NCBI GenBank assembly: GCA_023213395.1
Contig: CM041465.1
Location: 49,669,741-49,733,740 of the forward strand
DNA from: Cycas panzhihuaensis
Lineage: Eukaryota; Plantae; Cycadophyta
Direction: 5' to 3'
Length of the DNA stretch: 64,000 bases
The notes beneath the pieces are model-generated. The model was not told the DNA's origin. It saw only the letters and a program-made list of their open reading frames with translations, and ran no database searches. Positions 12,541 to 44,880 of the stretch are shown piece after piece. The translations under genes were made by a program, and so were the position numbers. Numbering within the stretch: position 1 is the first letter of the stretch; each line of letters opens with the position of its first letter.

Positions 12541-13017
12541 GGAAAAATGCCAATAAATACCCATTTACATGTCTTTTGGGAGAATGGTTGTGACTTATGG
12601 CCACAACCATTTTATTTTATAACAAAGGGCCTTTTCACTATGATTATATCACACATCATTAATTACACTTTATTTCATCTATACGACTATACAAATGCAT
12701 GCCTCATGATGACATCAACATCCCTAGGAAGTACGGCTCTAATCTGAGTGTATGTTCCTTGCATTCCTCACAATGTATTCTGCATACATTCCCAGCTATG
12801 TTGTGTTCCTTTCAAGAACGCACCCTATCATGCATTCCCCAAGAGCTCCATTTTGTCCTTTTTCACTATTTCCTACCATGCTTTCCATTGTGCATCCTCT
12901 TGGTGATACATTCCTTCATTCCTCAGGTCAAGATAAGCATGCATTCCTGCTTTCCCACTATCCAAAATGGCCCAGGTACTAGATTTAACCCCAACAAGAA
13001 CATGGAATAAATTTACA

Positions 13018-13568
13018 CTCAAATATTCACATTATCAACAACACTGTTAATATATTCCATCAAGGCATTAGTACAGTGATATTAATAGCATTGTGATTAG
13101 AACATTTGTTGTTGGCTCATTGCTTTATGTGTTTTCTTCAACCTCATCAATACCATCTACATCATGTAACACATCATTATCTTCACTAAACAATAATAAC
13201 ATATTATGTATTATGCAACAAACCAAAATAGTCTATGGTAGTAAATGCAAAATAGGATTACAAATTTTTGAATGAAGAATTCTCTAATTTTGCTTTAGTA
13301 TCTCAAAAGCACATTCAACAACAATGCATGTTGATGATAACATAAAGTTAAATTGTCATTGACTATTAGCCAGTTCTCTACTAAAGAATGTGCTTAACCA
13401 TGGCAATAGTGAATTCCCACCATTGCTAATAATATACTCCCTCATGTCAAATAGCCCAATACAAATTGATTGACCACTTAACCTTTGACCTTTTTCACAC
13501 AATCTAAAGAATGACGAGTTGTGCAATAAGCAAGAATCATTAATAGAATTAGGACAACCAATGAAAAT
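13018..13568 (-). pseudogene. Harbinger (DDE_Tnp_4, ALP1/HARBI1-like) transposase, C-terminal part
   Basis: IFIGCPNSINDSCLLHNSSFFRLCEKGQRL..REYIISNGGNSLLPWL..FNFMLSSTCIVVECAF.ILKQN*RIL..TILVCCIIHNML. Confidence 0.9.
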
Positions 13569-15855
13569 TGTTGGCATTTTGAGACGGGTTTCGCTTTACT
13601 TTACACTACAAAGAAGCAAACAAACAGCTCAAAAGCACAAGATGGAACACAAATGATCTATCTTTATTGAAATGGAAGCCTCAAGACTACAAAAGAGCAC
13701 TTAAAGTACATTGAAAGGATACCAAAGACACATACTAACAATACGCTATTACAATGTACATATGACACAACCTTCCTTTACAATTATTGGGCCTTAAATA
13801 GGTAAGAGTGGCCCTTTCTCATGGAATGCTATTGGAAAAATATATGACCCCCACTTTTGTTAGTGGACATAGACAACCTACATACACAAGTTAGGAGATA
13901 GCACTAACCACCATGTGCCTTGATCACATGTGTTAACAATCTAGTTTTGCAATCAGTAGATGGTTATGTAATAGGTCCTCTCCCCTGAAATGTTGATTCC
14001 CCGAAGCTTAGAAGATGGGGATGTTGTTTAATAAACTCGGTTGACTCCCATGTCGCTTTCTCTAAATCACAACCAATCCATTGCATCAAATGCTCAGAGA
14101 TGGTCTAATTCCGAAGGCGGTGTTGTCAACTCACTATGATACGGTCAGGTGGAATGATGAGAAGTTACTGATCATTAAGGACCAGAAGGGTGATCTAAGG
14201 GACAATTTTTTTGCCAAGGTACTTTTTAAAATAAGAAATATCGAAAACGTTGTGGATCTTTACGTCTAGCAGGAGTTTAAGTGCATAAGCAATTTCACCA
14301 ATCTTTTGGAGAATTCTATATCGTCCATAGTAACATGGGTTTAGCTTGTCACTTTTGTTGCTCTTCATTCATTATTGTTTATATGGCTAAAGGCACAAGA
14401 ATACAAGGTCATCAATGGAGAAGAATCGATTAGAATAGTGGCAATCGATGAGTCGCTTCGTATGATTCTATGCAGTGACAAGGTTTTGCTTGAGAGTATG
14501 CAAGATTTGGTCCATCTCTTGGAGGGTTTATTTAACAGAAGCAATTTAGAGATTAGTTGCTAGAGTGTGGTGGGAAGGTGGGGGTATCCATAGAGAGCCA
14601 TAAATAGGGACATACCAATAGCTGAATGGTGTGAAGAATTGTGCCAATATTCAGTAAGGGGTAGCTAAGAAGTCCACTTAGCCTAGTAATCAGAAGAAAA
14701 ACAATGCAAGTAGGTTTCTAGGGTTTTATTTAGTACTTCAGACTAGTCATCTGTTTGTAGGCGGTATGTCAAACTCATTTTGAATGAGGTTCTCGATGCA
14801 TAGAAACGTTCTTGCCAAAATGAGCTAGTGAATTCAAGGTTTCTATCATAGACTATTGATGAGGGAAACTCGTGGAAGCAAAAGATGGATTGGATGTAAA
14901 GTTCTATGAGACATGATGCCTTATATAAGGTGTGGACTAGAAGGAAATAGGCATATTTAGTCAGCCTGTCGACGACAACTACAATCGACTTTGATCCGGT
15001 AGAGATTGGTAGGCTAGTGATAAAATCCATGATGTCCTACTTTTTCCCTTGGGGAATGTGCAAAAGTTGGAGGAGACCTAGTAGAGTCTTTGTGTCTACC
15101 TTGTTTCTTTGACAAGTGTCACATTTGGACACGAAGATAAGGATGTTAGATTTCATAAGAGGTCAGAGAAAATATGCGCAGTTGTAGTGATATGTCTTAT
15201 CAAACCTAGAATGGCCACCCAGAGGAGTAGAATAATATTCTGATAAGATGTAAGGAATGAAAGTGGAGGCAAGATGGACAAACATATAGTTTTTGAGCAA
15301 GAGATGATTATTGTGAGTGGAGCCCTTTTGGTTGTGGACTTTTGCAATCCATTGCAGGTAATTCGATTGGGACTAGTTTTCCATAGCTAAATCTTCTAAC
15401 CAAGTGGGTTGGCGATTAAAGATGGCATGAATGGCGGGATCTGGAGTAATGGGATCAGAAAGCAGGCAGGAGAGGGTGTCAACAACAATATTGTCTTTCC
15501 CCTTCTTATAAGATATGGTGAAATCAAACACTCGCAAGCAATCAATCCACTTACCCTATTCTTCAAACCATATTGGTTGATCTAAAAGGTGGTGGAAACT
15601 ATGATGATTAATGAGGATTGTGAATTTGAGCCCCAAGAGATATTGTCTCCATTTATCTACTACATGTAAAATTGCTTTCATTTCTTTTTGATAAGTTGAG
15701 AGCCAACATTCGTGACTTTTGAGTGTATGACTTTCAAAGGCAATAGGATGAAAATTTTGCACGAGTATTGTGCCTAAGCCAAATTCTAAGGCATCACATT
15801 CAAGTTCAAAAGATTAAGTAAAATTTGAAGTAACGAGAATAGGTATTGAGGTCAT

Positions 15856-18800
15856 TGTTAACATAATCTAAGAAAATTAAATAAGAAGAGAATCTGAAAA
15901 AGGAATGAATCCTCATTGAATTAGCTTGGAGATGTAGTCTTTATAAATATACATCAATGTTGTGACCGTTACAACTTGAAATGTAACCAACTCTTCCTGA
16001 GGTGACACGTGTCACAATATCAAGTATAAGTTATAAGATGAGGGTATTGAACATTACCCCTTTACTCAACCTAGGATAAAACATTATATCCTAACACCCT
16101 CTCTTAATGTTTTATCTCTTTCAGTCCTATTCTATCTCTTAGAATTTGGAATCTTTCTTTCCCAAGAGGTTTTGTCATCAGATCTGCAATTTGCTCTACA
16201 GTGGGACAATATTCCAATTCAATTTCCTTGTTGTGGACCTTTTCTCTTATAAAGTGATGGTGTACTTCTATATGCTTTGTTCTACCCCATGAAGAATTGG
16301 AATTTTAGTCAACTTGATGGCACTTTGATTGTCATAATACAGAACTGTTGCCTGACTTTATTGTTGTTCCACTTTAGCCAGAAGTTGTCTTAACCATATT
16401 GCTTCACATGTTGCAGTTACAACAGCCTTGTATTCAGCTTCAATTGATGAGAGTGCAACTGTGGATTGTTTCTTACTACACCAGGAAATGGCAGCTAATC
16501 TTAAGAAGAAATAGTATCTACTTGTGAATTTCCTCTATTCTCTGTCACTTGCCTAGTCTAAGTCACAGTAACCTGTCAATTCTATTGTTCCTTCATTGGA
16601 GTAAACCAACTTTAGATCTTTTTCACCCTATAGGTACCTTAATATTCTTCTGGCTACTTTCCAGTGTCATACTTTGGGTTCCCGCATATACCTGGAGACT
16701 AGCCCAATTGAATATGATATATCTAGTCTGGTGGTTGTAAGATATATCAGACTCCCGATCAATTGTCTGTACAAAGTGGCGTCTACAACTTGTTCTTCTT
16801 TTTCTATCACTAAGTTGCAATTCACCTCCATGAGCATCGCATAAGGATTACAATCTGCCATCTGGAATTTAATCAATAGATCTTTTATATATTTTCCTTG
16901 TGATAGGGCAACATGATTTTGTTTTTGGTCTACTTCCAGTCCCAAATAGTAGTTTAGGAGCCCTAGATCTGTCATTTCAAATTTCTTTTCGAGTTCCCTT
17001 TTTATGTCCATGATAGATTCTTCATCATTCCCTATAAGAATCATGTCATCTACATAAACAACAATGATTGTAATTAGTCCATTTCTTGTTCTTGTGTACA
17101 AATTAGAGTTAGAGTTGCATTTCTGGAACCCATTTTGACATAGATGATGATCCAATTTAGCATACCAAGCTTGAGGAGCTTGTTTCAACCAATACAGAGC
17201 TTTTTTCAGCTTACACACTAGATGTTCTTGTCCTTCTTTGATGTATCCTTCAAGTTGTGTCATGAAAACTTCCTCTTCTAGATCTCCATTCAAAAAAACA
17301 CTTTTTATGTCAAGCTGAAAATTTTTCTAGTTATTCAAAGCTACTAAAGCAATAACTATTCTTACCATGTTCATTTTAGTCATAGGAGAAAACGTTTCCT
17401 CAAAGTCAACACTAGTTGTTTGGATATATCCCTGTGCAACAAGATGAACTTTGTATTTTTCCATCTTCCTACTGGCTCCTTCTTTGATTTTCTAGACCTA
17501 TTTGCAATTTACCATTGGTTTGTTGGGAGGTAGTTCCACCAAATCCTATGTTTGATTTATGATAATCGAATCCATGGCTTCTTTCCATTTTGGTTGATTT
17601 TGGGCTTCTTGGAAAGATTATGGTTCAACTCGACTAAGCAGAGCCTTGGGCCTTTGGCTCCTTGTTTTGTGTTCAAGCATGTTTCCTCCTCCTCCTTCAA
17701 CTGTTTTGATGAACCATTTGGGCAATTTCTTCTCTTTTCTTGTCTCTTCTTTGTTCCTTGATTCTTATGCTAATTGCCCTATAGATGAACTTTCTCCTTC
17801 TGTTGATTGTTCTGAACTTTCTCCTATGGTTGACTTTGTGAGAGGAATTTCTTCTATGGTGATTTCTAAAATTTCTTTTGTAATGACTTTGTGACATGAA
17901 TCCTTTCCTCCTTCTTCAATCACCTTCAGCTGAGACTGATCACCTAAATTGTCCTCTTCATTGAAGACAACATCTCTGCTTACATAGATCCTATTTGTTT
18001 TTTGATCAATGCATTTCTAAGCTTTTGAATTTTTGTTGTATTCAATCATGATACGTTCTATGCTTTTTGCATCAAGTTTTGATCTCCTCTTGTCCGGTAT
18101 ATGAACGAAGGCCTAGCTACCAAATATCTTAAGAGAATTGACATTGGGCTTCTTACCTATTCAAGCTTCCTCAGGTGTGATGTTCTCTAATGCTTTCATT
18201 GGACTTTTGTTTATTAGATAGCAAGTAGTGCTAACCGCCTCTGCCCAGTATGATTTTGGAGTTTGCTTCTTGTGGACCATACTACGAGCCATTTCCGTTA
18301 GAGTTTTGTTTTTCCTCTCGACAACCCCATTCGACTGGGGTGTATAGGGAGTTGTAAATTGTCTACATATCCCATTTAACTTGCAGTAGTTTAAGAAGTC
18401 CTTTGAGATGTATTCACCACCTCCGTCTGATCTAATGCACTTTATTTTGGCTTCGGATTCCAATTCTACTTCTACTTTGAACTCCTTAAAAATTTCAAAA
18501 GCTTTTGATTTATTATGGAGGAAATACACCCATAGCTTTCAAGTGAAGTCATCAATAAAGGTGAGAAAGTGTCTGCAACCATTTATTGAAAGGGGCGATA
18601 GTGGTCCATAGAGATCCGTATGGATTAACTCCAGCTTGGTTTGTGCTCGCCATTTGCTTTCTTTGAATGGTAGTCGATATTGTTTGCCAAATTGACAACC
18701 TTTGTAGATAAAATTATTAGAGGAAACATAAGATAAACCATTCACCATGCCAGATTTTTCCATTTCTTTTAATGTTTCTACTGGAAGATGTCCATACTTC

Positions 18801-21120
18801 AAATTCCACACTTGATTATTAGAATTTACAATAGTACAGGCCTTCACACCCAGATTAGGTATTACAGGATCTAACATTAGTTAGTATAGATCATTACATC
18901 TTATACCTTTAGCTATTGCTTTCCCATTATTTTTCATATCTAGTATGTGGCAATAGCCTTCTTCATCAAATATAGTTCTTAGTCCCTTTTTGCTAAGTTG
19001 AGAAATAGACAGACGATTCATTTTCAATCCAGGGACTAATAATACATTTCCAATTTTCTTCACATTCCGTCGCAAGTTAACATTAATGGTACCTACCCCT
19101 TTTATGCCAAGTGGCTATTTATCACCTAATTCAACTAATTTGTCCATGTTGTGGGGTTTGAGAATTTCAAACCAGTCTTCACGATTGGTCATGTGTCACG
19201 AAGCTCCTAAGTTGATGTACCACGTGTCTCCTTCCTTTAGTCCTACTGAAAGTGCAACAACAAACATTGTTTCTTCTTCTACCTCCTCGATTTGTTCTTT
19301 GCTATAGTTGCCAACTGGACATTTCCTTCTCTGAATATTTGCTCTTCTTTATAGGCACTAGTAGGGATAATGTCCTAACTACTTGCAATGGTAACACACA
19401 TCAAATGCTCTACAAGCATTGGAGAAATGTCTAGGTCTTCCACATCTGAAGAAGATTCGTGATTCTTTGCTTCGTCCATGTCCTCTACTGTCCTATCATC
19501 AGCCACGAGCAAAGCTTCTAACATCTAGAGTGCATCTTCTTCCACATGTCTAGCCATGTCCCTGAGAACCTAAGTTCAGCCTAGATGCAAAGGCATCTGC
19601 CAATTCTGATGATTCTTCATAGCGCCTATTTCTTTGTTCTTGTCTTAACAATAACTTAGTCAATTTGTCAAGAGACATAGTATCAATTTGATTGTTATTC
19701 ATTATGGTGTTGATGGTTACATCAAAGGATTTTGGTAGCTTGTTGGCCACCATTTGAACAAATTCTTATTCTGGAACAACTTCTCCTGCACTTAACAGGC
19801 TATTTCTAAGTGAAGTAACTTTATGTATGAATTCAATTACTATTTCACTTTCTTTCATGCGGAGTTTATATAAATCTTCCTTGAGAGCAAATATCTTTGC
19901 TTTGTTCTTTTGGCCAAAGAGATTTTCAAAGCATTTCCAAATAGCTGAGGCAAAGTTTAATTTTTCTACATATACCAACAGAGGAACTGAGACAGAAAGT
20001 TTTAAGATAATTACTCCTGCAATGTCTCTTTCTATCCAATTCAGCAAGGATATACTAGTATTTGCTGGCTTGGCTTCAGTCCCATTAGCGATTTTCTAGG
20101 CATTTTTTGCCCTTAAAAATGTTTCCACTTTTATTTTCCAAATGTGATAATTTGTATCTGTAAGTTTATCTTGATCACATAAACCAAAGATGGAGGACGC
20201 CATTGAAAAAGCTGATAAATCTCAGAAACAGGTGCTGGCCATATAGTTGTACGGAATTCCGTCCGTAATTGAAATTGTATGGATTAGAAAAAAAAAAAAA
20301 GTGGTCTCAACTTCAAGATCTTGAAAATGGGTGTCCAAAAATATAAATATTTTTTTGAGATTCAATCTAGTCTGAAAGAAACAATAGGAAAAGACTCCAA
20401 AATCATGTGGCTAGGGTTTTGATAAATTCATTGAAAAACCCACAAAAATCTAAGAAAAACTCCACAAATCTAAACTTAATCTCTTTGTATTAGATAGAGA
20501 AAGATATCAGAGTAATTAATACCCAGATTTTGAAGAATTTCTCCAAGAAATTTGAAAAAAGTAGCCTCAAACCCGCGCGGCTAAAAAATGGACAAATAGG
20601 CCCCAAAAATGGCCCTAGATGAAAAAACTCTAGAAGAGAAAAGTGACGGCCATGATGAAATGGTCCTGCAGACCAAATTTCGTTGAATTCTAAGCAGGTC
20701 AAAAAATCAAGTCTATACAATTGATCCTCTGACAGACAAAAATGTTCTTCTAAGTAATTTGGCTCGATCTTGACTTCCTTTAGACTGAGAAAAAGTTTGG
20801 CTCCAACAAACTCCAGAAACCCTTGAACAGAATCTTCAAAAAGACTTCAAATTAGGCAGCCTAACCTGCTCTAATATCATGTTAACATAATCTAAGAAAA
20901 TTAAATAAGAAGAGAATCTGAAAAAGGAATGAATCCTCATTGAATTAGCTTAGAGATGTAGTCTCTATAAATATACATCAATGTTGTGACCGTAACAACT
21001 TGAAATGTAATCGACTCTTCCTGAGGTGATACGTGTCACAATATCAAGTGTAAGTTATAAGATGAGGGTATTGAACATTACCCCTTTACTCAACCTAGGA
21101 TAAAACATTATATCCTAATG
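15856..21120 (-). mobile_element. Ty1/copia element C3, full length, nested in the G3 RT/RH junction
   Basis: 241-bp LTRs 15856-16096 and 20880-21120 (9 mismatches); perfect TSD GTCAT (15851-15855, 21121-21125); PBS rc 20868-20879; PPT rc 16097-16104; gag/INT/RT ORFs 19766-20047, 18161-18877, 16667-17293; related to C1. Confidence 0.97.
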
Positions 21121-24100
21121 GTCATAACTACTTTTAGGTGATTAAAGTCAAATTTTGTAGTTGGAGACTATTGGGATGAGTCATTTTATAAGAGGTTACT
21201 TAATGGGACAGCAAGGGAAGCATAGTTGCAAACAAAGTGACAGTAAAACTTGGTGAGGCCAAGAAAAGCATGTAGTTGGGTGAGGTTTGTGGGGATTGGC
21301 TAGGTGGTGATAACTAAAATTTTATTGAAGTCAACATGGACACCAGATGAAATGATATGTCCTAAGTATTGTAATTCTAATTTACCAAATTCACATTTTG
21401 AAAGCTTAGCGTACAATTGATGTTGGTGGAAAATTTAAGGGACAATTTCTAAATGGTGAAGACGTTGGTTCAAACAAGAGTTGTAAATAAGTATATCATC
21501 GAAAAAGTCAATGACAAATTTCTAAATATGGAGGGCAAAAATTTTGTTCATTAAGCCTTGAAAGGTGGTTGGGGCATTATAGAGGTTGAAAAGCGTAACT
21601 CGGAATTCAAAATGACCATGATGAGTTCGAAAGGCCATCTTATGGCATTCATCAAGAGCAAAGGAGATTTGATAATAGCATGATTGAAGGTCCAACTTGG
21701 AGAATAAAGTGGTGCTATGAATTTCATCAAGCATATCATCAATTCTTAGAGTGGGGAACTTGTTCTTTATGGTGATTTTATTAAATTCCCTATAATCTAC
21801 ACAAAGACGGAAGGAGCCATCCTTTTTCCAAACAAGCACTATCAAGGCACCATAGGGACTTTTACTTTGTTGTATAATCCCCATATCCATTAATTCCTTC
21901 GTAAATTTTTCAATCTTATTTTTTTGGAAGTATGAATTCCTATAGGACCCAAGGATAATTGGGTCATAAGAGGTTTGGAGTTCAATGGTATGGTGGAAGC
22001 CACAAATTAGAGGGGAGGTGACTAGGAGAGGAGCAAATACCTGTTGGTATTTGTTGAGAATATCCTGAATATCTAGGTCAATATGAGGGTTGGCTTGAAT
22101 GTTGTTAACATAGACTATGTACCCAAGTTTAGTCTGTAAATAGCTCTGCATTTAGTTCTGTGAGACAAGCTTGTTAGGAGGGAATTGGATGCCATAGAGA
22201 TTGTGTGATTTGTCCATATTATCCTTAAATAATATGAAAGGGTTATGAGGCAAATTGTTGGTACTATATGTACCAAGAGTTAGAAGCCATTGGACTCTGA
22301 GGATAGCATTTGACCCACCTATGGAGAGCATAAAAATAAAAGACTAGGAGATAGGTGCCCATTTGAACGTGTAAATGTTTATAACACTAGCACAATGCAG
22401 CATTTGATACCCAAGCAAGGAGCAAGTGGAGCCAATGTTTGAGACTATGTAAAGGTTAAGCTGCTTAGCTAACAAGATATCAATAAAGTTCAACAATGCA
22501 CCACCATTGATCAGGATGATCATGGGGGTTTTTCACAGTGTACCTTTGACTCTCAGTGGTTCAAAGCAAGAAATGGAGATAACAACAAATAGAGACACTT
22601 CTGGTTAAGGATTTAAGCAAGGCTCCATGGTTGGTTCTTCCTCATGTTCTTGGTCTGAGTCAAATTCTGAGTTTTCTTCATGGGAGAGGCTAGGGTCAAT
22701 GGTGAACACCAAACATTTGGCTTTACAAACTCTGCCATGGCCAGGAGTCCATTTCTCTAAGCATTACATGCAAAGGCTAGCTTCCCTGCATTGATGTGCT
22801 TCTACAAGAGGTACATGAATGAGGTTCGTCAAGGACTTTGTTGGCAATTGATCTGCTAGAAGATGTTGTGCCTCGTCCACACATGATAGTTGACATGGAA
22901 AGCTTGCTTGTTGGGCCTGCTAGTACTAAGGAGGATCACGACGAAAGTTAGATGTTCATTTAGTTGCAAATTCTACCTCCACCACCTTAACCATGGTTAT
23001 GGCTTATTTTAAATTTGGTAGTGACAATGTTCTCAAGCGCATTTAGATGCACTCTTTAAGCTCTAAAACATATGTATCAAGAATTGTTTAACGATCCAAG
23101 TTCTGGCTAACGCAATTATGCAAGGTTTGGAACTCACTAGTATAAGCTTCCACTGAAAATACTTGCTTCAATTGTGTTAGTTGATTAAAGAAATACTGGC
23201 TTCAAGTTTCTTCATATTGTTCAAAGAAACTATTAGAAAAGTGTGCCCGCGTCTAATTAGCAGGGTACTCCCATTGCCATCAATAAAACCAATGATGTGC
23301 TTTACCATCCACATGTATAGATACAAATGTTATCTAGTCATCGATCGATATTGGATTGAGTGAAAAGACAAACTCCAACTTGCTTATCAACTTCGTTCAC
23401 TATCCCTGTTGAGATCTGGATAAAATGCAGGTATGTTAATTTTGTATTGTGGTTATTATTGTCGTGGTGGCAAAAACGTATGAGGAGGAGGAGTTCCACC
23501 TATAAAGTTTGAGGTACCCGTGGAATTAGATGACAAGTTCAATAATTGAGTTGTAATTTGTCATTTGGTTCACAATAGCAGCCATGTCAGATTTCGATGT
23601 CACATCATTCTTTAATAAGGTCAAGTCAACCTTTACCTCATTCTAGAGTTCAGCGGACTTGAGTATCCAATGAAAGAATTTGATCAACCTAGGTGGGAGC
23701 CATCATTGATATAGAAAGGGATTACAAGAGAGGGATGTAGGTAAGAAAAAGAGATATAACAAAAACGGGATCAACAAGACAAAATGGATTTTAATGAATC
23801 AGGAAGTAGATAGACAGAATAGGACTTAAAGAATTAGGAAATGTTGACAAGAGGGGGAAAAGGAAGGGGGTGTCTATAGCCTACTGACCCCCAAAAATAA
23901 GGAAAGAATTCACCTATTACACTAAGATGAGCACGAAGAGATTGTCAAAATGGGGTAGGTGAGTTTTAAGTGAAAATGTTAGGTTGTGGGGCCCACAAAG
24001 TGCCTATATGTCATACGTTGAAAATGACAGTTAAAACTGCCCTAGTAAAAAATGACTAGCGCAACGCACTAATCGAAATAATATGTATGAATAGCAAAGA

Positions 24101-24137
24101 GTAATTTTGGGCCATTAACTGAGTCCTTAATTATTTT

Positions 24138-24410
24138 TGTGCTGAGTCTAGTAGTGCAAGTTTCATCTGAATCTGAGGCGTATTTACTGAAGTGACCCTA
24201 CAAACAAGGTGATGGCTCTTTTCTTTCTTTTTTTTTTATTTTTTTAGGGAGGGGGGGGGTTGTGCTGAGTTTAGTAGTGCAAGTTTCGTCTGAATCCGAG
24301 GGGTATTTACTGAAGTGACTCTATAAACAAGGTGATGGCTCTTTTCTTTCTTTTCTTTTTTTTTGGGGGGGGGGGGGGGGCGGGGGGAGGGTGTGTGTGG
24401 AGGAGGGGGG
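24138..24410. repeat. about 123-bp tandem duplication ending in T- and G-runs (G3 leader)
   Basis: Copies start at 24138 and 24261; G-tract 24365-24410. Confidence 0.85.
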
Positions 24411-24475
24411 ATTTGTACACTGGATTTAAGGATTGAGATCTAGACTCTAGACTAAAGGTTTGGACAAGAAGAAGC

Positions 24476-24575
24476 TGTGAACACTTTGGTGCTATTACTA
24501 TAATGTTGGATTATGTTGTTATGTTGTGAACACTTTGGTGTTGTTACTATAATACTGGATTATGATGTTATGTTG
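24476..24575. repeat. 49-bp tandem duplication
   Basis: TGTGAACACTTTGGTG.. starts at 24476 and 24525. Confidence 0.85.
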
Positions 24576-26082
24576 TTGATGTTGTAGAATTTGTTAAGAT
24601 GAACTTATTTCAATAGCACTTTGTTTGGTAATATAGTAGTATTTATCAGTTTCTAGAAGTACAATAATATTTATCAATTTTTGAAAATACAATAATCTCA
24701 ACAACTTTGATAATATAGTAGTATTTGATGGTTCAGACATCCTATAGACTCTGACATAGGTTTACCTAGTCTATAGGCCCTTCAATAAACTTCTCTATTG
24801 ATACTAACGCTCAGCCCAATATCTTAGGGCACTAGCTACAGAGGAATGTCCTTCCCATAGCCATGAGAGCCATGTAGAGGTGCTCGAGAAAGGTAGCTGC
24901 CTAGCACTAACTACTAACCAATGCACTAGAGATGATAGGCAACCAATAGTTTGCCTATACTAGGTATGGAATAAGAACCTAAAAAGGGTCCTCTGATATA
25001 TCCAAAAGTATGTGGGGGCTCGATTCCATAGCCAAGTACTATTTGAAGCTTGCATAAGTAGTGTGATATGCTTCACTTCATGCACAAACATATACCCACG
25101 TACACTTGGCCGAGAACAATAATTCTTTGTGATATTTATAGACCCCCAACACAAAGTTTCTACCTAATAACTAAGAGACAATGAGTGTGAGGGCTTGTTG
25201 CCCGCTTACAATGTGTTACAAAATTTGCAGAACTATTACAAAATAGAAAGAAAAAAGAAATGTAAGAGAGCATTTTGAAGAATTTCACCATGGAAAAAAA
25301 ATCTCAATTTTCTTGCTTGTTTCTTGCAGCTACGTCTTCTTGGTCCCTTGAATCTAATCATGAATGCAGCTCTAATACCACTTGAGATGAGTTTTTCCTT
25401 GCTTTACACCATAAAGAAGCAAACAAACAACTCAAAAGCACAAGATCAGACACAAATGATCTATCTTTATTAAAATTAAAGCATCAAGATTACAAAAGAG
25501 CCCTCGAAGTACATTGAAAGGACACTAAAGAGATGTACTAACAATACATTATTACAATGAACATATGACATAACCTTCCTCTACAATTATCAACTCTTAA
25601 ATAAGTAAGAGTGGCCCTTTCTCATAGAATACTATTGGCAGGATATATGGCCCCCGCTTCTATTGGTGGACATAGATAGCCCATGCACACAAGTTAAGAG
25701 GTAGCACTAACCACTATGCACCTTGATCACATGTGTTAGCAATCCAGTTTTGCTACAGGCAGGTGGTTATGTAACATATTTAAACTAGGATCATATAGTA
25801 GAAAATAGGAAAACAACTACACTCAAATAAAATTAGTTTCAAAGGATTATTTGCATTCATCTTCTATTGATTTACAAAACATTAAGTGTAACTATATACA
25901 CTATAAAAGAATGTAACCGACATGCAACTAATGTTGACATATGTATGGATGGATAAATAACAACCATGACTTATCACTCATACACTAATAAAAAATGTTA
26001 GTAATACAATACACAAAAGGGAGAAGCTCATAACATTAAAGTTATGAGCCTAGACATAATGTAAACATTAATTATTCTAACA

Positions 26083-26533
26083 AAAGCATCCGTGAAACGT
26101 ATATTGTTGTTAATAATTTCTTGTAATACCATGCTATAGTTGTGATCTCGATCATGCCAATCTGCAGAAGACTCATTCTTGGAAGTTCATATTAAATGTG
26201 TGTTGCATTTATAACCCCACAACAATTTGGAAATCCTTGTTGATGGTGAAAACCATCTTTCACATGCTGAAGTGATATGCAATAAATTGGGCACCATATA
26301 GAATTAGAAGTTCAGAATTGCATAACCTAGATAAACTTTTTGATAGCCCTAACCATAGTGGACTTTCCAAAACCAAATAGTTGGTTACTGTATAAAAATA
26401 AATGTTCATAGTTGCATAGCGAAGATAAACTTCTTTATGACCCCAATCACGTAGACTTTCCATAACCAAATAGCTCACTAATATTAAGCACTATCATCAA
26501 TGATGATAAATGTAAAATGGCAATAGCAACTGG
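26083..26533 (-). pseudogene. Harbinger transposase, central part (HTH and first catalytic motif)
   Basis: VAIAILHLS..SELFGYGKST..GFHHQQGFPNCCGVINATH..ESSADWHDRDHNYSMVLQEIINNNIRFTD. Confidence 0.9.
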
Positions 26534-29483
26534 CATAGTGGATCTGACATCCACTACCTAAGTAAGTTTAAATTTTTGAAAGTATTTCTTAAAATACTGA
26601 ATTTTATTTGAATTGAATAAATGTGATGTTTTTACATGATCCTGGGGCATATTTATACAAATGAGGCACCTCTTATGAGAAGTCACAATTGTTCATAATA
26701 ATTTTATTAATATTTACAATTGGTTGCAAGGTTTATAACAAGTCCCTCCCTTTCGAAATGTTTTATCCTCAAAGCATGGGAAGACTTTGAAAAGTTCTTG
26801 TATTTGCGCATTAGGCTCCTCCTTAGTTGATTTTCAACTTGTTTCTTATTAAATTATTATTTTGTCAATAAGGTTTCCATGGAATATAATTGAGCGATAA
26901 AACTTGCTTGCCCTTGGCTCATCTTTGATGTAGGGGTGTTTTAGATTCAGGCATAGAAATTCCAAAGAATTGGTCGAGTTTTCCATCCCATCAAAAACAA
27001 ATAAAATTTTAGTCATGGTTCAGTGCATAAGTTCCTAGTTCCCTGAGCCATTCAATTCTAAGTACAACATCCATGTTGCCTATGGGAAAGGTGCAATAAC
27101 TAGTGTGAAAGGTGAAAGTATTGATTTGGAGTTGTTGGTTAATGAGCTCCCCATCACAATTTATCTGTCTCCCACTAAGTACGATTATTTGAAAAGTCTT
27201 GGATCTATCAACAAAAAGGCCCAAACGGTTTGCAGCCTTGGTGTCTATGAAATTGTGAGCGCTTCCTAGGTCAATAAGAACAACTATTTTTTCTTTTCCT
27301 AGGAATCCCTATAGCTTGATGGTGTTGGATTGTGGGATGCCTAATATGGCTACTAAAGAGATAGAAGGTTGGCAATCATCAAGAGGTGATATCCCCATAA
27401 GAGGTGTTTAATTGTCAATGATATCAATTTCACCGTTATTAGTGTCTATTGCATAAAGTTGGTTTCGTCGCAAACATACCTTAAGGTGTCCTATAGACTC
27501 CTTTTTGCCACAATACCGACATTTTTCATTCTAAACTACCTTTTTAGGTTTTGAAGTGTGGCCTGTAAGCAAATGTTGATTTCTAGAATCGGTTTGTTGC
27601 CTAGGAGGAATGTATTAGGAGGTTTGTGCTCACTACTTGACCTTAACTTGTCTTGCAAGACTAACGGCTTTCTCTAGTGTAGTAGGTTGAAAACTTTTGA
27701 CTCCAACATCGATGTTAGGTTGTAGGTTAGCTTGGTAGAATTGTATTATTTCTTCATCTGAATCAGTCATTTCGAGTTGGAGTTTCTCAAAGCATTCAAT
27801 GAATTCCCCAACTGATCAATCGTGTTACAAATAATGTGACAACTAGACTTTATAAGGAATAGCATTTGGTCCTTCAATTCGCTTGCACATGGCATCAACA
27901 AAGTCACCCCAAAGAATGTAACCACGATTCAAATACCATTTTTGTGCCCATGTGATGATATGTCCTTTGAAATGGTTAATAACAAATCTAATTTTTTCCA
28001 TTGAAGGCAATAATTTTTAAGATCCTGGAATGCTACTTTGAGTTTGGCAATCCATTCATCAAGATCAATTGTACCTTTGATATTAAACTTAGGAATAATA
28101 AGCTACCTTTTGTATTGAACCATTGCCTAGTTATTGTTATTGCCCAAGTTATTGTGAGACTCAGGAGTTTCGAGTCTAGGATCGTTTTGTCACAACATAA
28201 ATTTTTGGATGTTTTCATTCATTTATTCCATCTACTGTTCAATGGCATTGAGATGGGCATTAATATTATTGTTGGGGTCTCCCTTCTTTGCCATTTTTTG
28301 TTTTTCTTATATTCTATTGTATTGGGTTTTATGGAGCCAGAATAGAGCTCCGAACTCCAATTTGTAGGTTCCTAATGATCTATTAGGATATTCTTTATTT
28401 ATCAAAGTCAAGGTTGTGGACATAAGCTTTACAAGTCAACTTGATTCATTGGTCCTTCACGAAATAGTCTCACCTCTAGAGGTTATATTTCTTTATTAAT
28501 CACTTGTCGTACATTTGTTTTGCAAGCCATTTGTGTTTTGGCCATAGGCCATCAATAATAATGGCAACTATGTTATATATATATATATATTTCACGTATG
28601 ATATGATATATTTTGCGTATGATATGATATATTTTGCGTATGATATATTTTGACCCTACATATGTAGGATCCAAATTCAATAGAAAATGCAAGATAGTTT
28701 GACCTAATGATCAATTGTTATGTTGGCCGATGATGAGCTAGTATACTATTTTTAGTTTGCATGTGGTCAAACGCAGTGGTTACAAATTGATTTCTTCCCA
28801 CTCTTTGACTGACGATTAGTTTGAGAGATTGTGCATCTACTATTTATGGCATTAGCATTTGCATGACTCTGTGACATGATAGAGTTATTTTCCATGGCTC
28901 AGACTGTCTGTTGTAATGTAATCGTGTTAATAGTTGCTTGGTGACAGTTATTTACATTGTATGATATCGTCGCTAGGTTTATTGCATATATATGGCCTCA
29001 TAGGGACGTAAGCAGCTATGTAGAGATATTGGGTTGTATTTTTTTTCAAAATCAATCACTTTTCTGATGGACCATCCATACTTGCCATGGAATTCCTATT
29101 GGGAGGATATGGTTAGCAATGAAGGCAAAGAATGACTCTTGTGCTTCAATCTGCACTAAGTCACCCATTCACAAGGAAGATATATTGCTGGAAATTTTTT
29201 ATTTTAATCACTAATATTTTTTAGTTTGGAATGTGAATTATCTAGTATTGTAGACTAACTTGCTCTAATACCACTTGTAGAGGATCTGACATCCACTACC
29301 TAGGTAAATTTAAAATTTTGAAAGTATTTCTTAAAATATTGAATTTTATTTGAATTGAATGAATGTGATGTTTTTACAAGATTCTGGGGACATATTTATA
29401 CAAATGAGGCACCCTTTATGAGAAGTCACAACTATTCATAATAATTTTATTAATATTTACTATTGATTACAAGGTTTGCAACA
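26534..29483 (-). mobile_element. non-autonomous gypsy G4 (gag plus protease only, TR-GAG-like)
   Basis: LTRs 26534-26740 and 29276-29483; TSD ACTGG/ACTTG; PBS rc 29262-29273; PPT rc ~26741-26753; protease VLIDLGSAHNFID..DVVLRIEWLRELG ~27010-27300; gag remnants 27500-28300; no RT/RH/INT core. Confidence 0.9.
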
Positions 29484-29859
29484 ACTTGTTTCTCGATAGT
29501 AATAACTTGCTTTTTATAGATGTAGCCAATGAGTGTGGTTTATTACATTAGTAAAGATCTTCATGCAATAGTTCACAAAGTGATTGAAATAGTGGATGTG
29601 GCAACCTAATGCTTTGAAAATGCTCATTATCACATCTCACTTTGAAAACATAATGGTTCCACCAATGCAATGAATGTGGTTTGATATAGTAGTCACCTTG
29701 AATTCTTCCAATCCATTCATAAATTAATAAATCAAAATCTACAAGTATATTTCTTTGAACAAAATAAATTGAAGTAACAAGCTCTAAACTATTACTCTCT
29801 TTTCGACCATTCAAACTCCATAGAGATTGTAATGAGTTCCACTTAAGCCTCTTAAACAT
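29484..29859 (-). pseudogene. Harbinger transposase, N-terminal part
   Basis: ORF 29548-29859: YIKPHSLHWWNHYVF..DNEHFQSIRLPHPLFQSLCELLHEDL, then VITIEKQV at the insertion boundary. Confidence 0.85.
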
Positions 29860-31125
29860 GCATTTGCTATTACTTGAATCTTCATTGTCATACCATAACT
29901 ACATTGTCAATTGAACAATTAAAGATACAATTACTAAAGGAACATGAATAGTTTCTTTAAGATCAATCCATTCAATGTTGTTGATCTCTCAAAATCTTCA
30001 ATATCAAAATAATGTATTGATAAAAACTACACACAAAACAAAATAGTCAATTATGCAAGAAACAAAAAGAAATTGAAAATATAATTTAACTATCAATCAC
30101 ACAAATTTAAATATGAATTTTATATGAAATTATAGCTACTTAGGCTATTACTTACTTGTAGCCGAGGAAAGTCGCAAACTTAAAACAATATAAATATAAT
30201 AAAAGTATAAATATATGCAACCAAATAGAAGATATGACAAGTGTATTAATATAATTGTTATTATAGAACTTAAATTTTATACACAAAAATAGGTGTCAAT
30301 TGTTATAAGTAACAACCACAATACCATACTTATTCCATGATTGAGAAAAATCATTTATTTTTTTCAAGGACTCACTAATCTTTAAAATTACTTATCCAAT
30401 TGCATTCAAAATTGAAACCAAGTCAAGTTGTATTTTATCCTTCTATTCCTTTGCATGAATCATCCTTTGTTTATTCTACTCATCCTTGCTCAAATTTGGT
30501 AGGATCTGTTTCGAGTCATTTCATATGCCCCTTCTTAGCTAACTGAAGGTTAGAAATGATCTATTTGTTATTTTAAATCAATGTATTTCAAGACCTATGA
30601 TTTTAGATGTCAATTGCATTTTATTCTTATGGATTGCTTATTTGTTTTATTTAATACACCAATTAAATGGTAGTTCTCATTGTCGTATGCCATCTTAGGT
30701 GGTGTTTTCTCATACATTGTTTCATTTTGTTTACAAGAAGGAGAATTCTTGAGTATTCCATATTTAGTTGAAGATGTATCAACAGTTATGTCTCTAGGAT
30801 CGTGACCAAAACTATTTTCCATTGCATGAAAAATATCTTCAAAATAATTTCTTGACAATTTCTTATCCATCCTCTCTCTAGTTGTCATATTATAAGGGTT
30901 ATCATGTCATAAAGGGATATTTTTGTCATAATCTCAAATCTCCTTGTACTCTAGTCGAATATGCTTCCACTTATTGTGGCATTGGTTGGTAGAATGCATT
31001 ATACCATTGTCTGAGCAATACTTTTCCATGGCTCACCACTTTTCAATGGTTGTTTGAATTTCTCTTACTATACCACTAATAAATTGCATGCCTTTATCCA
31101 CTCATTTTATATCAATTAGAATAAA

Positions 31126-34100
31126 TTTTAGATACAAATTTTCACTAATGTTTAATTCATTAGTGTTGACTAGAATACCCCCTTCATACTCATTTACCAC
31201 TTGAATATTTCATAAATATTATGTTGTAGTGACTATGTAAAGCTATGCAAGTGGGCAAGTTGATATGTATCCTAGTTCACCAAGAGCACACCAAAGTTGA
31301 CTTGTGGAGATCTCACACGTAAGAATATTCTATATGTATGTACATTTTGTAAAATAATAGAACATAAACTTTTCATTTTGTGTTGCACTTGCTATCTTGC
31401 ATCCTCCATTCTGTAAGATGTGGTATCATTGCCATACCACATCCAAGAATTGGTATCAAAGCTAAGAGAGCATGGCTTGATCCCTAGCAAGATCATTCAT
31501 TTAATCATGGAAGTCCTTCATTGAGTGAGTAGTTTCATGGCTAAGAGTTTTTGTCAAAATATCATATGTTATAGTTCCTTTGTAGTAGTTTTTTTTATTG
31601 TAGTGTGGAGGTTTCATGTACTAAACAAGTAGTTATTTTTCAAATTAAATGTTGAAAATGGAATGTGAAGCACTTGAAAATTAGGAGTTGCAAATTTGAA
31701 ACTACAAGGATATCACTACATCAAAAATTAAATACTCACTTATGTGAAGATGAGCATACGGGACTAGCCATCCGAACAACTCATGAAATGGCTAACACTG
31801 GCTATTTTGTTTAAAACGGGAAATGCAGAATACATGTGAATGTATTCCTTTTTCTTTTTCAAGCCAATGCATTCAGTCCATTTAGTTAATCTACTATTTG
31901 CATTTGAATCCTAGGGTTGTTGAATTATTGTGAGTTCTCATCTAATCTCTATGTTTTCTATTAGTCCACATACTAGATGTTGATCCCATTTCTCAAGCAG
32001 TTGTTGTTGTTGTGACTCTCTAGTGTGTGGGATTTACTATTCACTTAGTATCTATGAATATTTTGTCCACTATGTTTGGTATTCCATATTGCCTCTGTCA
32101 TTTGCATCTCTTACCTGATTTCATTTGCATATATACCGGGCTCCTCTCCCCTCTCTTCATTATGTCTCTTTTTCAAGGAACGTATATATCAATCTCATCA
32201 CATTTGTCTATAAGAAGACCCGTGTGTTTCCATTGAAGAATTGCATTGGATTATTGCACTTATATTGTTTAAATCAAATGGAGTGACCATATCACCATCT
32301 TTGTAGCATTTGCATCTCTTACTTGATTTCATTTTCATATGTACCGGGCTCCTCTCACATCTCTTCATTATGTCTCTTTTCCAAGGAACATATATATCAA
32401 TCTCATCACATTTGTCTATAAGAAGACCTGTGTGTTTCCATTGAAGAATTACATTGGATTATTGCACTTATATTGATGAAATCAAACAGAGTGGCCACAT
32501 TACCATCTTTGTAGCATTCACCCACGTACATAGCATCTACCCTTTGTTATCTTGGTTGAATGGTATCTGGGGTTTTGTGGATGGAAGAAGCCTCTAGAGA
32601 TGAGAAGGCCTTGGTGAACTAGTTTGAAGAGAGGTTTTGCAAATGGCATCCTCATTAAGTTTACTGTCTTTGGACCTCTTTGGAGGAGCCTATTATAGAG
32701 CTCGTCACAATGCGCACTTAATGGATGGGCTCCTAGAAACACGTCAAGGGCTTATCCCTCTTTAAGATGCATATCATCATGCCAATGTTATCTATGCCTT
32801 GATTCTATGTGTTGAGAGCCCCTAGCAACACACCAAAGAGTGCAAAGAAATGAAGCCTCCCCTCAAGTATCAGCATGCATTAATTTAAGCTTAGAAGTGC
32901 TTCATTTTTCTCTTTTGATGATTGTGCTTAACATGTGGGTTGGTTGCTTATCCCCACCACTTCAATTAACATGTAGGAAGCTACTTCAATTCACACACAA
33001 GAAGTGCATAGAGGGCAACAAATTTTATGGAAATTTTGATGTGCACTCTTGTTTTTTTTTCTGGAAAAGGTTGATTAAGTTCAAACAGAATGAATATTTT
33101 TTGAAATATGCTACACCCCCCTTACTTCAAGTTGAAGGTCATATGGAATGACAATGCACTCAGGAACCAAACATCAAAAGGCCCAATTTCAAGGATTTTT
33201 TTTATTTGTCATACTCTGTTACATGTTTTCCATTATAACTTTTGCATATGACCTCTAATTTCATTATGTTAGTTACATTGAAATCCCAACTCAATTTCCT
33301 TTAAAATGAATAGTAAAATGACCACTTTTGATTCTGTTTTAAATGTGAAAATTAAGCTTAAAGTTGAGTCTCTTCTCTTTTGAAAGAAGAAAATGCTCAA
33401 ACAAAATGTTTTAAATTGATGCCATGATAGGCCAAATTTAATGTGTTTATGCCAACACCCTGTGTAGTTATTGATGATTGAAACTAAGTCACACAAGTTT
33501 ACTTAAAATTTAAGCTCAAAAGAGGTTAAAATTAGTGTTTTCTAGCACCCTACGAGGTGACTAATGACCTTTCTAAAACATTGTTCTTGATGATGTGGCA
33601 TGTAAGACCTTAGAAAGACTTTGTATTAAGTTGGCCAAATGTTAATAGCCAAAATGTGTGACAAAATTGAAGAAAATTGGCATCAAGGGAGAGTCATATG
33701 AAGATAATTATAGCAGCAAGTGAATGAATACAACGACGGTAAGTGGCAACAACTAGTAGCAAATATCCCTTAGCATATTTTTCCTTCTAAGTATGCTTTG
33801 TCATCTTTTGATATGAGATTCTTTTCAAATCACATGAGTATGATGCATATGAATATGTTTTAATGAAATTCTGCTACATAATGGCACTTTAGAAGCCAAA
33901 TTTATGATTGATGTATGCTGCTTAGCAAAAATTTGATACATTGTTGGCATTGCAACCTCTAGGATATAAAGGAAATCTCCATGCTTGTGGCTTAATTATA
34001 GTTGTTGTTTATAAGGACACCATGTGTTAGAGTCACGTTTGTGTAAACCTCATAAAGTAATTTGTGAGGCCATATAGCCCACTTACATATTTTCAACCAT

Positions 34101-34766
34101 TAGATGTCGAACAAGCTACCATAGTCCCATTAGGCAAGAGGTTGGACATATCTTATGCTACTCTTGCATTTATTTTCTAGCACACTTGATTGGCCACATA
34201 GGACATGTCCTCAAAGCATTGTTGATATATAGTTGATTGAACCACATAACCAAAGAAGCTACTTAGCAAATTAACAATTACAAGGCCGGTTAATATGTTG
34301 TCTAGCAAATGGAGTCTTCTTCATATAGATGTCAGCAAACTTGTTGAAGATTGGAGTAGCTTGAAGCAGCTACAGTAATAAGAAGATGAAGCAGCAAAGT
34401 TAGCAAATCTAAATCAATGAATTAAATATTAAGGGGAGAAATGTTAGGTGTAAAATTTTACTACTATTTAATTCATTAGTATTGACTAAGATCTCCCTTT
34501 CATGCTCATGTACCACTTGAATATTTGATGAATGTTATATCTTAGTGGCTATGTAAAGTTGTGCAAGTGGGCAAGTTGATATGTGTGTCAATCCACCAAG
34601 AACACACCAAAGTTGAATTGTGGAGATCTCACACATGTAAGGATAATATATATGTATATATATTTTGTAAAGTAATAGAACAAAAATTCTTCATTTTATG
34701 TTATATTTGTTGTCTTACATCCTTTGTTCTCCAAGATGTGGTATCATCGCCATACCACATCCAACA
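31126..34766 (+). mobile_element. non-autonomous LTR element N1 (LARD/TRIM-like, probably copia-derived) inserted in the Myb gene
   Basis: LTRs 31126-31448 and 34442-34766; PBS TGGTATCAAAGC 31451-31462; PPT AAGGGGAGAA 34431-34440; degenerate TSD ATAAA/AGAAG; no intact pol domains. Confidence 0.88.
32099..32518. repeat. 208-bp tandem duplication inside N1
   Basis: CATTTGCATCTCTTAC.. starts at 32099 and 32307. Confidence 0.92.
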
Positions 34767-37700
34767 AGAAGGGTGTCTAAAACACTCCAACGAGCTCTAC
34801 TCTTTGTTTGAGGGGGAATATCATGATGCAAAAACCACATACATGATTATAGATTTGTGGCCAAATGTGAGATGAAAGACAAGTATTTGGAATAAGCAAT
34901 GGCGAGTGAGAGAGGTTTGATTTGGAAATCCTACTCTTTATTCATGAAAGTACTACTCGGTTAAGGCTATGAGATCAAATTCTCACCCTTTGGTTGTGTG
35001 GATTTGATCCAAGACTAAGCCAACTAGTCAGGAATGCTAGCAAAGAAAATATGAGCAACTAGAGTAAGACACTTAGATCTTCTAAACATAGGAAAAACAT
35101 AAGCACCGCAATCATCAGACCCAAAGACAGTAGCTAAACCATGTCTACCATTAGATGACAAATAGAAGACGAAAGGAAAGTTTTGGGAATAAAAAATGAG
35201 AGACAAAAATTCAGTTCCCCTTGAAAATTTTGTTCTTTTTATTAAAAATAAAAAAAGTTCTTAAGATCAGTGCACTTCCTAGGATGTTGAAGGCCTCTAC
35301 CTATGCACAACGGTTAAGAATCCATTTGGAATAATAAAAGAATTTCGAAATGGCCATTATTTACTCCTTACCTAATCAAGACAAACTTAATGGCCTCAGT
35401 TCACTCTTCAAAATTTCAAAAATGGCCTCAGTTTTTTCTCTTAGTGACTCTGATAAACTCACTGGACAAAACTATAATGCATGGAAGTTAAAAATGCAAG
35501 GTCTTTTAATGGCTAAAAGTACATGAAATATTGTCATTGGAAAGGAAACAAAACCAACTAATATAATCTCTCTAAGAGAACACTTGTACAAACTCCAATT
35601 AAAGAAAGGATAATTTGTCTCAAATTTTATTACCAAAATAGTAGAAGTTAAAGACAATTTGGCCTCTACAGGAGAAACAGTGTCTGATTTTGAAATTGTC
35701 TGTCTTACACTCAATAAACTTCCAAAATCCTCTAATACTATGGTAAATACTCTTATTGTTGGTGAACATGCTACTAGCATGTCTTTTGAAACTTTAATAC
35801 GACATATGTTACAGTAGGAACAAAGAATTAAAAGATATAAAGAGGAGGCTGAAATTGAAAAAGCCTTCATTTCAAAGCTGAGAATAGATGGCAAAGGTCA
35901 TTCTAAAAGCATTCTAAGAGGAAGAGGCAGGTTTGCTAAAGGAAGGACATTAGAAGGAAGAGTCAGGTCTATATTATCAAATTCCAGACCTTACTATCAT
36001 TATGATAGATATGGACATTTTTCCAGTGATAGCAGATTTTGTAATCCACCAACTTGCTATCATTGTGGACGAGTAGAACATTTTTCTAACCATTGTCCTC
36101 AAAGGCATGCAGAAATTCAAAGAGGGTAAAGTGTTGAAGGAAACTATAACAATGAACAAACCAAAGAAGACAAAGATGAAATCACCTTTATCACAACCTT
36201 AACCAAACTTACTCATAGTAATGAAGACTAGTATATAGATTCTAGAGCATCCAATCACATGTCGGGTAGAGGCGACTAGTTTGAGACACTCCAACCATAC
36301 CCTCTCAACAAAACAATTGAACTTAGTTGAGTTTCCTTTAACATAAAAGGAAAGGGAACAATTACAATCCTAATTAACAATAAAGTTAAAAAAAATTGGC
36401 GATGTTATATGTCCTAGGATTAAAGAAAAATCTTTTGTCAGTATCTCAACTAAAAAAGAGGTTTTGTGTTGTCTTTGTTGAAGATGGAAGATGCTACAGC
36501 CATGATATGAAGAAAAATGGTGTTGTAATAGCATAAGGGATAGAAACTAACAACTTGTATAAGTTAGTCTCTACTCCTATCCTACCTCCTGCTATAAAAT
36601 CTTTTGTTATTAACAAAAGTATTAATGAAATGTGGCATTCAAAATACAGACATATTGCAAATAGGTGGTTTGAATGTTTGAAAAAAACAAATATATCTTT
36701 TAATCCATTCATATGTCTTTTAATCCATTCATATGCAAAAGTTGCATAATTTGAAAACAACATCAAACCCTATTTTTAAAAAGTATATGGAAAGCACAAA
36801 AGAAGTTAGAGTTAGTTCATACAAATTTGTGCGGTCCAATCACACCAAATTCAATTAATGGTGCAGTATATTTTCTTACCTTTATTGATGACTTCTCCTA
36901 AAAAACTTGGGTATATTTCTTCTTCAACAAATCAAAGGTTTTAGATCATTTTAAAGAATTCAAAGCTCAAGTGGAGTTAGAAAGTGAATGCAAAATTAAA
37001 ATTCTCAGGTCTGATGGAGGGGGAAAATATATTTCAAATGATTTCTATCATTTTTGTAAATTGAATGGAATACAAAGACAAGTCGCAACTCCTTATACAC
37101 CTCAGTCAAATGGAGTATTGAACAAATAAATAGAATAATAATGGAGATGGCTTGATGCATGATAAACGAAAAAGCAATGACAAAAGTCTATTGGGTTGAA
37201 GCAGTCAACACATTCGTATATCTTATCAATAGGAGTTCTACTCAAGTCCTTGATAAAATCACTCCTAAAAAAGCCTGGACGAGAAAAAAGGCAGTCGTAG
37301 GTCATCTCAAAATCTTTGGAAGTAAAGCTTATGTTTATATTCCTAACAAAAAAGAACTAAGCTAGATGACAAAAGTATAGGATGCATTATGATTGGATAC
37401 AATAATAAATCTAAAGCATATAGATGCATAAACCCGAAAATAAACAAGGTTTATGTTAGTAGAGATATAACATTTGATGAAAATGTATCCAAAGAAGATC
37501 AGGAAGGGAAAATTATTCAAAAACAAATTAAAGAAAATGCAAAAGTGCTCACTCCAGTAGAGGAAATATCTAAAGTGACTACTATAGAAGGAAATATCTC
37601 AAAAAGCGAGCTCCAAGGAGAAAATAAGCAGGATATTTCTAAAAGCAAGCTCTAAGGAGAAAATGAGCAGGATATTTCTGAAGAAGTGCAAGATCCATCT

Positions 37701-44610: not shown

Positions 44611-44880
44611 TGGGGCCCACAAAGGGTCATTGGCTGCTAGACAATGTGGGGCCCACAAAGGGTCAGCTGAGCCGGATAATGGATGCCTAAAGTGTCACTG
44701 GCCGAGAACAGAGACCGTGGGGCCCTACAAAGGGTCATTGGCTGATGGACAAGATCGGGGCCCACAAAGTCTTCTTCATGTGGATAACATGGGGCCCACA
44801 AAGGGCCGCCGGACAATGAAATGTGGGGCCCTAAAGTGCTTTGGGTGAGCAGGAGGACTGTGGGGCCCACAAAGTGTCAG
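44611..44880. repeat. array of 7 GGGGCCC(AC)AAAG motifs in the C5 5' leader
   Basis: Copies at about 44611, 44647, 44718, 44756, 44790, 44824, 44861. Confidence 0.85.

Follow-up and report, generated by a model that had tools for sequence, protein, structure and literature searches.

A 64-kb window of the Cycas panzhihuaensis genome (the whole stretch of DNA that was analysed, positions 49,669,741 to 49,733,740 of contig CM041465.1), which is AT-rich (GC ~0.30-0.42) and crowded with nested long terminal repeat (LTR) retrotransposons, most likely holds an autonomous PIF/Harbinger DNA transposon in a single, very old and now dead copy. On the minus strand, a Myb/trihelix open reading frame (ORF) is followed by a DDE transposase, in a cassette that now lies in four pieces with three LTR-element insertions between them. 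This four-fragment arrangement had been proposed in an earlier note made from the sequence alone and is borne out here: the transposase pieces are collinear with an intact homologue of 459 residues from Taxus chinensis (P0001), and 5-bp duplications are found at the joins. A dead Harbinger copy is in itself ordinary; its lineage is less so. Judged by sequence, no transposon-like relative closer to the Arabidopsis proteins ALP1 (At3g63270) and ALP1-like (At3g55350) was found than the clade to which the window transposase belongs, which branches outside both. The parts of the cassette are the following.

34771..34846, minus strand: N-terminal piece of the Myb/trihelix ORF (..KSRARWSVLDT), which holds the first conserved Trp and has no in-frame start codon.
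30610..31122, minus strand: main piece of the Myb/trihelix ORF, in one frame, with the second (..EKW) and third (..NKW) Trp kept.
29986..30609, minus strand: spacer of ~620 bp between the two ORFs, from the Myb stop to the aligned transposase N-terminus.
29484..29985, minus strand: N-terminal piece of the transposase (P0001 residues 1-163), identified by tblastn, reading frames and tree placement.
26077..26533, minus strand: middle piece of the transposase (P0001 residues 164-283), with five stops and Asn at the first catalytic position.
13068..13568, minus strand: C-terminal piece of the transposase (P0001 residues 280-421 plus a tail), with Asn at the second catalytic position and the Glu kept.

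All pieces were searched, aligned and placed in trees one by one, with stops treated as X, rather than as a joined sequence. Collinearity with P0001 extends over its residues 6-421. When this protein was compared with the window by tblastn, residues 6-159 matched at 29958-29500, residues 165-250 at 26530-26180, residues 250-283 at 26183-26082 and residues 274-421 at 13592-13131, all on the minus strand, and no further transposase copy was found in the 64 kb besides these collinear places. The best overall match was the Ginkgo gene model Gb_09563 (P0066), with an identity of 45-71% depending on the piece. Both homologues score the Pfam family PF13359 (DDE_Tnp_4; E 2.5e-37 for P0001 and 8e-32 for P0066), and it is through collinearity with these two proteins that the window transposase is assigned to that family.

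The window transposase is dead. Its start codon has been lost (ATC at 29983-29985), and 11 stops lie in frame, at 29899 and 29548 in the N-terminal piece (codons 29899-29901 and 29548-29550) and at 26447, 26435, 26327, 26312, 26192, 13356, 13284, 13233 and 13125 further on. To the earlier description we can add two frameshifts, near 29505 and near 26175, together with a 93-bp (31-codon) tandem duplication within 26340-26490 on the minus strand, which repeats a helix-turn-helix-like stretch (..LFG-GKST..).

The motif string that the earlier note had given for the catalytic region is present in the window, and its account of the catalytic triad was confirmed when the codons were read directly: both Asp positions are AAT, encoding Asn (26207-26209 and 13422-13424), while the Glu is kept as GAA (13314-13316). 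The second Asp position and the Glu are 36 codons apart, the same spacing as between D330 and E366 in P0001. Of the columns that are invariant in seven close relatives, 151 have the same residue in the window and 54 a different one, and the 48 differences that can be explained by one base include 15 G>A and 6 C>T changes (21 of 48), against 8 of the reverse transitions. Four Asp-to-Asn changes and three stops are among the differences, and the two catalytic Asn residues are among these four. Since the two belong to this general G>A- and C>T-biased decay, they are better read as ordinary damage than as a domestication-type change; the N-N-E triad occurs in a gene broken by 11 stops and 2 frameshifts, rather than as a fixed ALP1-type substitution in a gene that is otherwise intact. 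D-D-E is read in nearly all members of the window's clade, and the ancestors of this copy therefore very probably had an intact DDE triad, as the note had supposed.

The upstream ORF can be followed in a single frame through its main piece, which has internal stops at 31102, 31033, 30934 and 30907 and a terminal TGA at 30610-30612. Its three spaced Trp residues (..RARW.., ..EKW.. and ..NKW..) are a hallmark of Harbinger Myb/trihelix partners (PMC5339849). The Harbinger-derived partner protein HDP2, which has been domesticated, keeps all three as the window ORF does (PMC5339849), whereas ALP2 has lost them (PMC7282668). ALP2 and HDP2 both derive from this sort of accessory ORF. In having two ORFs, one for a probable Myb/SANT/trihelix protein and one for a DDE transposase, the cassette also resembles the autonomous elements of the superfamily, such as PIF, Ping/Pong and Harbinger (PMC5339849, PMC4671723). 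By analogy with this superfamily, in the living element the upstream ORF would have encoded a DNA-binding protein that recognised the element's ends, and this protein would have recruited the downstream transposase, which would have cut and pasted the element.

To parse the insertions, each was defined by its terminal repeats, by a primer site or purine tract, and by its target-site duplication. They are listed here with their LTR divergence, given as Kimura two-parameter distance (K2P).

13569..26076, unstranded: outer TG..CA element of ~309 bp, probably a solo LTR, with the duplication AAAAT/AAAGC.
13581-25774, minus strand: Gypsy element inside the outer element, with LTRs of 392 bp, the duplication CATTT/CATAT and LTR K2P 0.196.
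15852-21118, minus strand: Copia element inside the Gypsy element, LTR K2P 0.03.
26534..29483, minus strand: small LTR retrotransposon (G4 in the earlier note), with LTRs of 208 bp, the duplication ACTGG/ACTTG and LTR K2P 0.10.
31123..34765, plus strand: non-autonomous LTR element (N1 in the earlier note), with the duplication AGAAT/AGAAG and LTR K2P 0.20.

This parse agrees with the solo LTR and nested elements described previously. The Gypsy element was inserted into the outer element 12 bp from the end of the latter, which must therefore be the older of the two. Besides a tRNA-Met-type primer site, the small retrotransposon has an ORF resembling a protease (27009-27224). The non-autonomous element has LTRs of ~327 bp (31123-31449 and 34439-34765), with a tRNA-Met-type primer site after the left one and a purine tract before the right one; its end, and the AGAAG duplication at 34766-34770, set the edge of the N-terminal Myb piece. 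The claim that every join is in frame across a degenerate target-site duplication held up codon by codon: the frames run continuously through R-F-T-D-A-F-I-G-C-P, E-K-Q-V-A-I-A-I and V-L-D-T-I-L-I-D-I, and the first two, which are the transposase joins, agree with the residues of P0001 at the same positions. The Harbinger copy is older than all the elements that broke the cassette. It decayed mostly through G>A and C>T changes, as expected of the deamination of methylated cytosines, and LTR retrotransposons broke it at three sites, their LTRs having since diverged by up to K2P 0.2. Published gymnosperm substitution rates would translate this into tens of millions of years, a figure sensitive both to the rate used and to the host.

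Some features of these and neighbouring elements were recorded alongside. Near-identical tRNA-Met-type primer sites occur in three different nested LTR elements, at 25370-25381, 29264-29275 and 31452-31463 (TGGTATTAGAGC / TGGTATCAAAGC). The non-autonomous element contains a 208-bp unit twice in tandem (32099-32518), the two copies being 92% identical, and no coding capacity could be recognised in it. Much the youngest element of the window is one of Copia type at 38852-45751. Its 554-bp LTRs share 98.9% identity (K2P 0.011), and it has an open gag ORF of 278 residues at 42721-43557 on the minus strand, which matched Logan proteins only, the best at 94% over 56% of the query. Just outside the cassette, a 203-residue ORF on the plus strand (11525-12136) gave no Pfam match.

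To place the lineage, an exhaustive phmmer search was run with a 79-residue piece of the transposase (13359-13595) against 1.84 billion representative proteins. This returned 61 proteins only, the best of them from Taxus, Ginkgo and Cryptomeria (P0001, E 1.6e-18). Sixty of them, all the real hits, could be classified: 29 belong to the window's own clade, 19 are ALP1-like, 7 are ALP1 and 5 are bryophyte proteins of ALP1 type. Ordinary PIF/Pong transposases are far more numerous in plant proteomes. None was among these 61 nearest proteins, which argues for a distinct, ALP1-proximal lineage.

Maximum-likelihood trees of 90 and 37 rows, which were unrooted and made without PIF, Pong, HARBI1 or HDP1 sequences, gave a consistent placement. 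In two trees, the three transposase pieces each landed independently in one gymnosperm sub-clade, with supports of 98 and 89 in the Shimodaira-Hasegawa-like approximate likelihood ratio test (SH-aLRT), together with Ginkgo P0066, P0067 and P0075, Taxus P0001, P0065 and P0078, and Cryptomeria fragments. This sub-clade is nested in a fern-plus-gymnosperm clade (99% support). Taken alone, the placement makes a gymnosperm host likely. An out-of-frame translation of the C-terminal piece, which acts as a negative control, showed no affinity and sat on a branch of length 6.6. The vascular-plant ALP1/ALP1-like clade is separate (100% support) and holds its own orthologues from ferns, Picea, Cryptomeria and Ginkgo; the gymnosperm ALP1-type orthologues among these keep DDE. 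When the window pieces were constrained to group with the ALP1/ALP1-like clade, a group that was named after the tree had been seen, the log-likelihood fell by 159.8 units (approximately unbiased (AU) test, p 2e-40). As for a root, no relative was found in the PDB, two scans of viral contigs for degenerate forms of the common Harbinger motif G-A-I-D-G-T-H brought up nothing of use, and a metagenome scan yielded host ALP1, ALP1-like, and moss and conifer transcripts only, with no transposon locus.

Gene structure points the same way. ALP1 and At3g55350 share one intron, conserved close to the 5' end (PMC4671723), which in angiosperm loci recovered from metagenomes is located at about ALP1 residues 48-51; the homologous site in the window (29632-29634) is uninterrupted and lacks this intron. 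ALP1 proteins have a 13-residue stretch at the intron site that the window's clade does not have. The two groups belong to the same DDE_Tnp_4 fold family, ALP1-type proteins being 43-48% identical to P0001, but the triad of angiosperm ALP1 reads DGV, DGA and similar and that of ALP1-like DDQ (PMC4671723), whereas relatives in the window's clade keep DDE. Unlike the domesticated ALP1 and ALP1-like, the window's clade is also multi-copy, and the window copy is linked to a Myb ORF.

In light of these data, the earlier statement that the transposase is closest to ALP1 and At3g55350 stands insofar as these are its nearest named relatives, to the exclusion of ordinary PIF/Pong; it fails insofar as the window pieces fall outside the clade formed by the two. 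The phylogeny called for at the time, run here piece by piece and unrooted, gave a position near the ALP1 types yet outside them. The note's further suggestion was that of a once-mobile member of the lineage from which ALP1 was domesticated. The decayed two-ORF cassette of Harbinger type agrees with a once-mobile element, but the unrooted tree puts a Klebsormidium protein and bryophyte proteins of ALP1 type between the window's clade and vascular-plant ALP1, which makes its lineage a cousin of ALP1, not shown to be its progenitor.

The evidence for mobility comes from relatives in other genomes rather than from the host genome. Eleven transposase proteins of the fern Adiantum nelumboides (P0081 and P0181-P0190), with intact catalytic motifs, are 91.5-100% identical to one another (median 97.8%) and are spread over at least 9 contigs, three of them lying on one 217-kb contig; this set is a candidate for a fern Harbinger family with recent activity. 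In Ginkgo, at least 12 gene models fall into two sub-lineages, and several of these models are truncated. At least 4 loci, many of them incomplete, are distributed over 3 chromosomes of Cryptomeria, and Taxus has 4 loci, one of which is annotated as a fusion to an unrelated enzyme. In the gene model of this last protein (Taxus chinensis P0078), an enoyl-CoA isomerase domain (PF00378) is joined to a transposase of the window's clade, probably as an annotation chimera that arose when a transposon inserted into or next to a host gene.

Several observations weigh against a transposon origin and need to be set against this evidence. None of the window transposase pieces matches Pfam when searched alone, so that family membership rests on the homologues. 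Autonomous PIF/Harbinger elements have terminal inverted repeats (TIRs) and a 3-bp target-site duplication, neither of which was found for this copy: in a comparison of 11500-13130 with 34800-36900, shuffled sequence gave inverted matches just as good as the best ones (16/20), and a search for inverted pairs flanked by TTA/TAA with 11/14 matches or more came up empty. Positions 13018 and 34840, offered earlier as the limits of the transposon, can for this reason be taken as the limits of the coding cassette only, and not as demonstrated ends of the element. In the Myb ORF, 32 residues (30937-31032) match Pfam Myb_DNA-bind_4 (PF13837) with an E of 4.6e-4 and 21 bits, below the gathering cut-off of 27, and its 98-residue C-terminal piece had no homologue in a homologous-protein search or a protein atlas. 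Finally, in a sub-lineage comprising P0068 (Ginkgo), P0070 (Cryptomeria, annotated as "ALP1-like") and P0069, the Ginkgo and conifer sequences share 84.5-86.5% identity over ~466 residues; ALP1-like orthologues, at ~71%, are less conserved. P0069 is a Logan cluster with 43 members, and the sub-lineage also appears as ~2-kb transcript-like contigs in many runs (locus L001:264-1643). Its triad is DDE, but DDD in Ginkgo. By these sequence features it looks like a conserved host gene and a candidate for a separate gymnosperm domestication, and consequently not every member of the clade is a transposon.

These points bear most on the idea that the cassette is a pseudogenised pair of host genes, in which a gymnosperm-specific domesticated transposase and its Myb partner lost their function without ever having been mobile at this locus. 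In its favour are the failure to find a TIR or target-site duplication, the host-gene look of the neighbouring P0068/P0069/P0070 sub-lineage, and the branching inside the conifer sub-clade, which partly tracks species relationships. We nevertheless consider it unlikely. The Myb ORF and the transposase are tightly linked on one strand, in the layout of an autonomous Harbinger, while in the known domesticated pairs, ALP1/ALP2 and HDP1/HDP2, each partner has a gene of its own (PMC7282668, PMC5339849); in Ginkgo, Taxus and Cryptomeria the window's sub-clade is present in multiple copies, some of them fragments, and its relatives retain an intact DDE. The absence of TIRs counts for little because decay is so deep, and the ends of so old a copy may have decayed or be located elsewhere. 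The weak Myb match and the orphan C-terminal part would also suit a transposase pseudogene that came by chance to lie beside an unrelated fragment of a trihelix gene. This is very improbable given that both ORFs lie on one strand, ~620 bp apart, in an order and at a spacing typical of Harbinger elements, that they are similarly decayed, and that both have received insertions of similar age (K2P 0.20 and 0.196). If the cassette were what is left of the host's own orthologue of ALP1 or At3g55350 type, as a pseudogene, this would explain the resemblance to ALP1 (P0001 and Amborella ALP1 are ~44% identical), as well as the change at both Asp positions, since acidic residues have changed in angiosperm ALP1 too (PMC4671723). 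This reading was rejected on the tests run and is scarcely credible: the AU test excludes the window pieces from the vascular-plant ALP1/ALP1-like grouping, separate gymnosperm orthologues of ALP1 type exist with DDE kept, the site of the conserved intron is unbroken, the transposase has a Myb ORF linked to it, and the Asn codons belong to the general pattern of decay. A dead, autonomous Harbinger-type element thus remains the reading that we favour.

The window copy itself is inert, and shows only that its lineage was once present in the host. ALP1 and ALP2 are a textbook example of transposon proteins that were domesticated together and became part of Polycomb repressive complex 2 (PRC2), and no mobile close relative of the two was described in the literature that we searched. 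The family to which the window copy belongs has retained the DDE triad, occurs in multiple copies and lies near ALP1, and in the window copy at least, a Myb partner with its Trp residues intact is still present. It would therefore supply the transposon-side proteins for a comparison with ALP1 and ALP2, the value of which hinges on a rooted tree, on the element ends and on the kinship of the Myb partner to ALP2. We raise, tentatively and as something that is on balance doubtful, the possibility that the fern-plus-gymnosperm clade is the surviving mobile sister of the element behind both ALP1 and ALP2. Liang et al. in 2015 reportedly speculated that the transposon proteins had bound or antagonised PRC2 even before they were domesticated. 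Should the sister relationship be true, intact and recently amplified members of the clade, such as the 11 Adiantum nelumboides copies and Taxus P0001, could reveal whether PRC2 binding or antagonism did indeed precede domestication.

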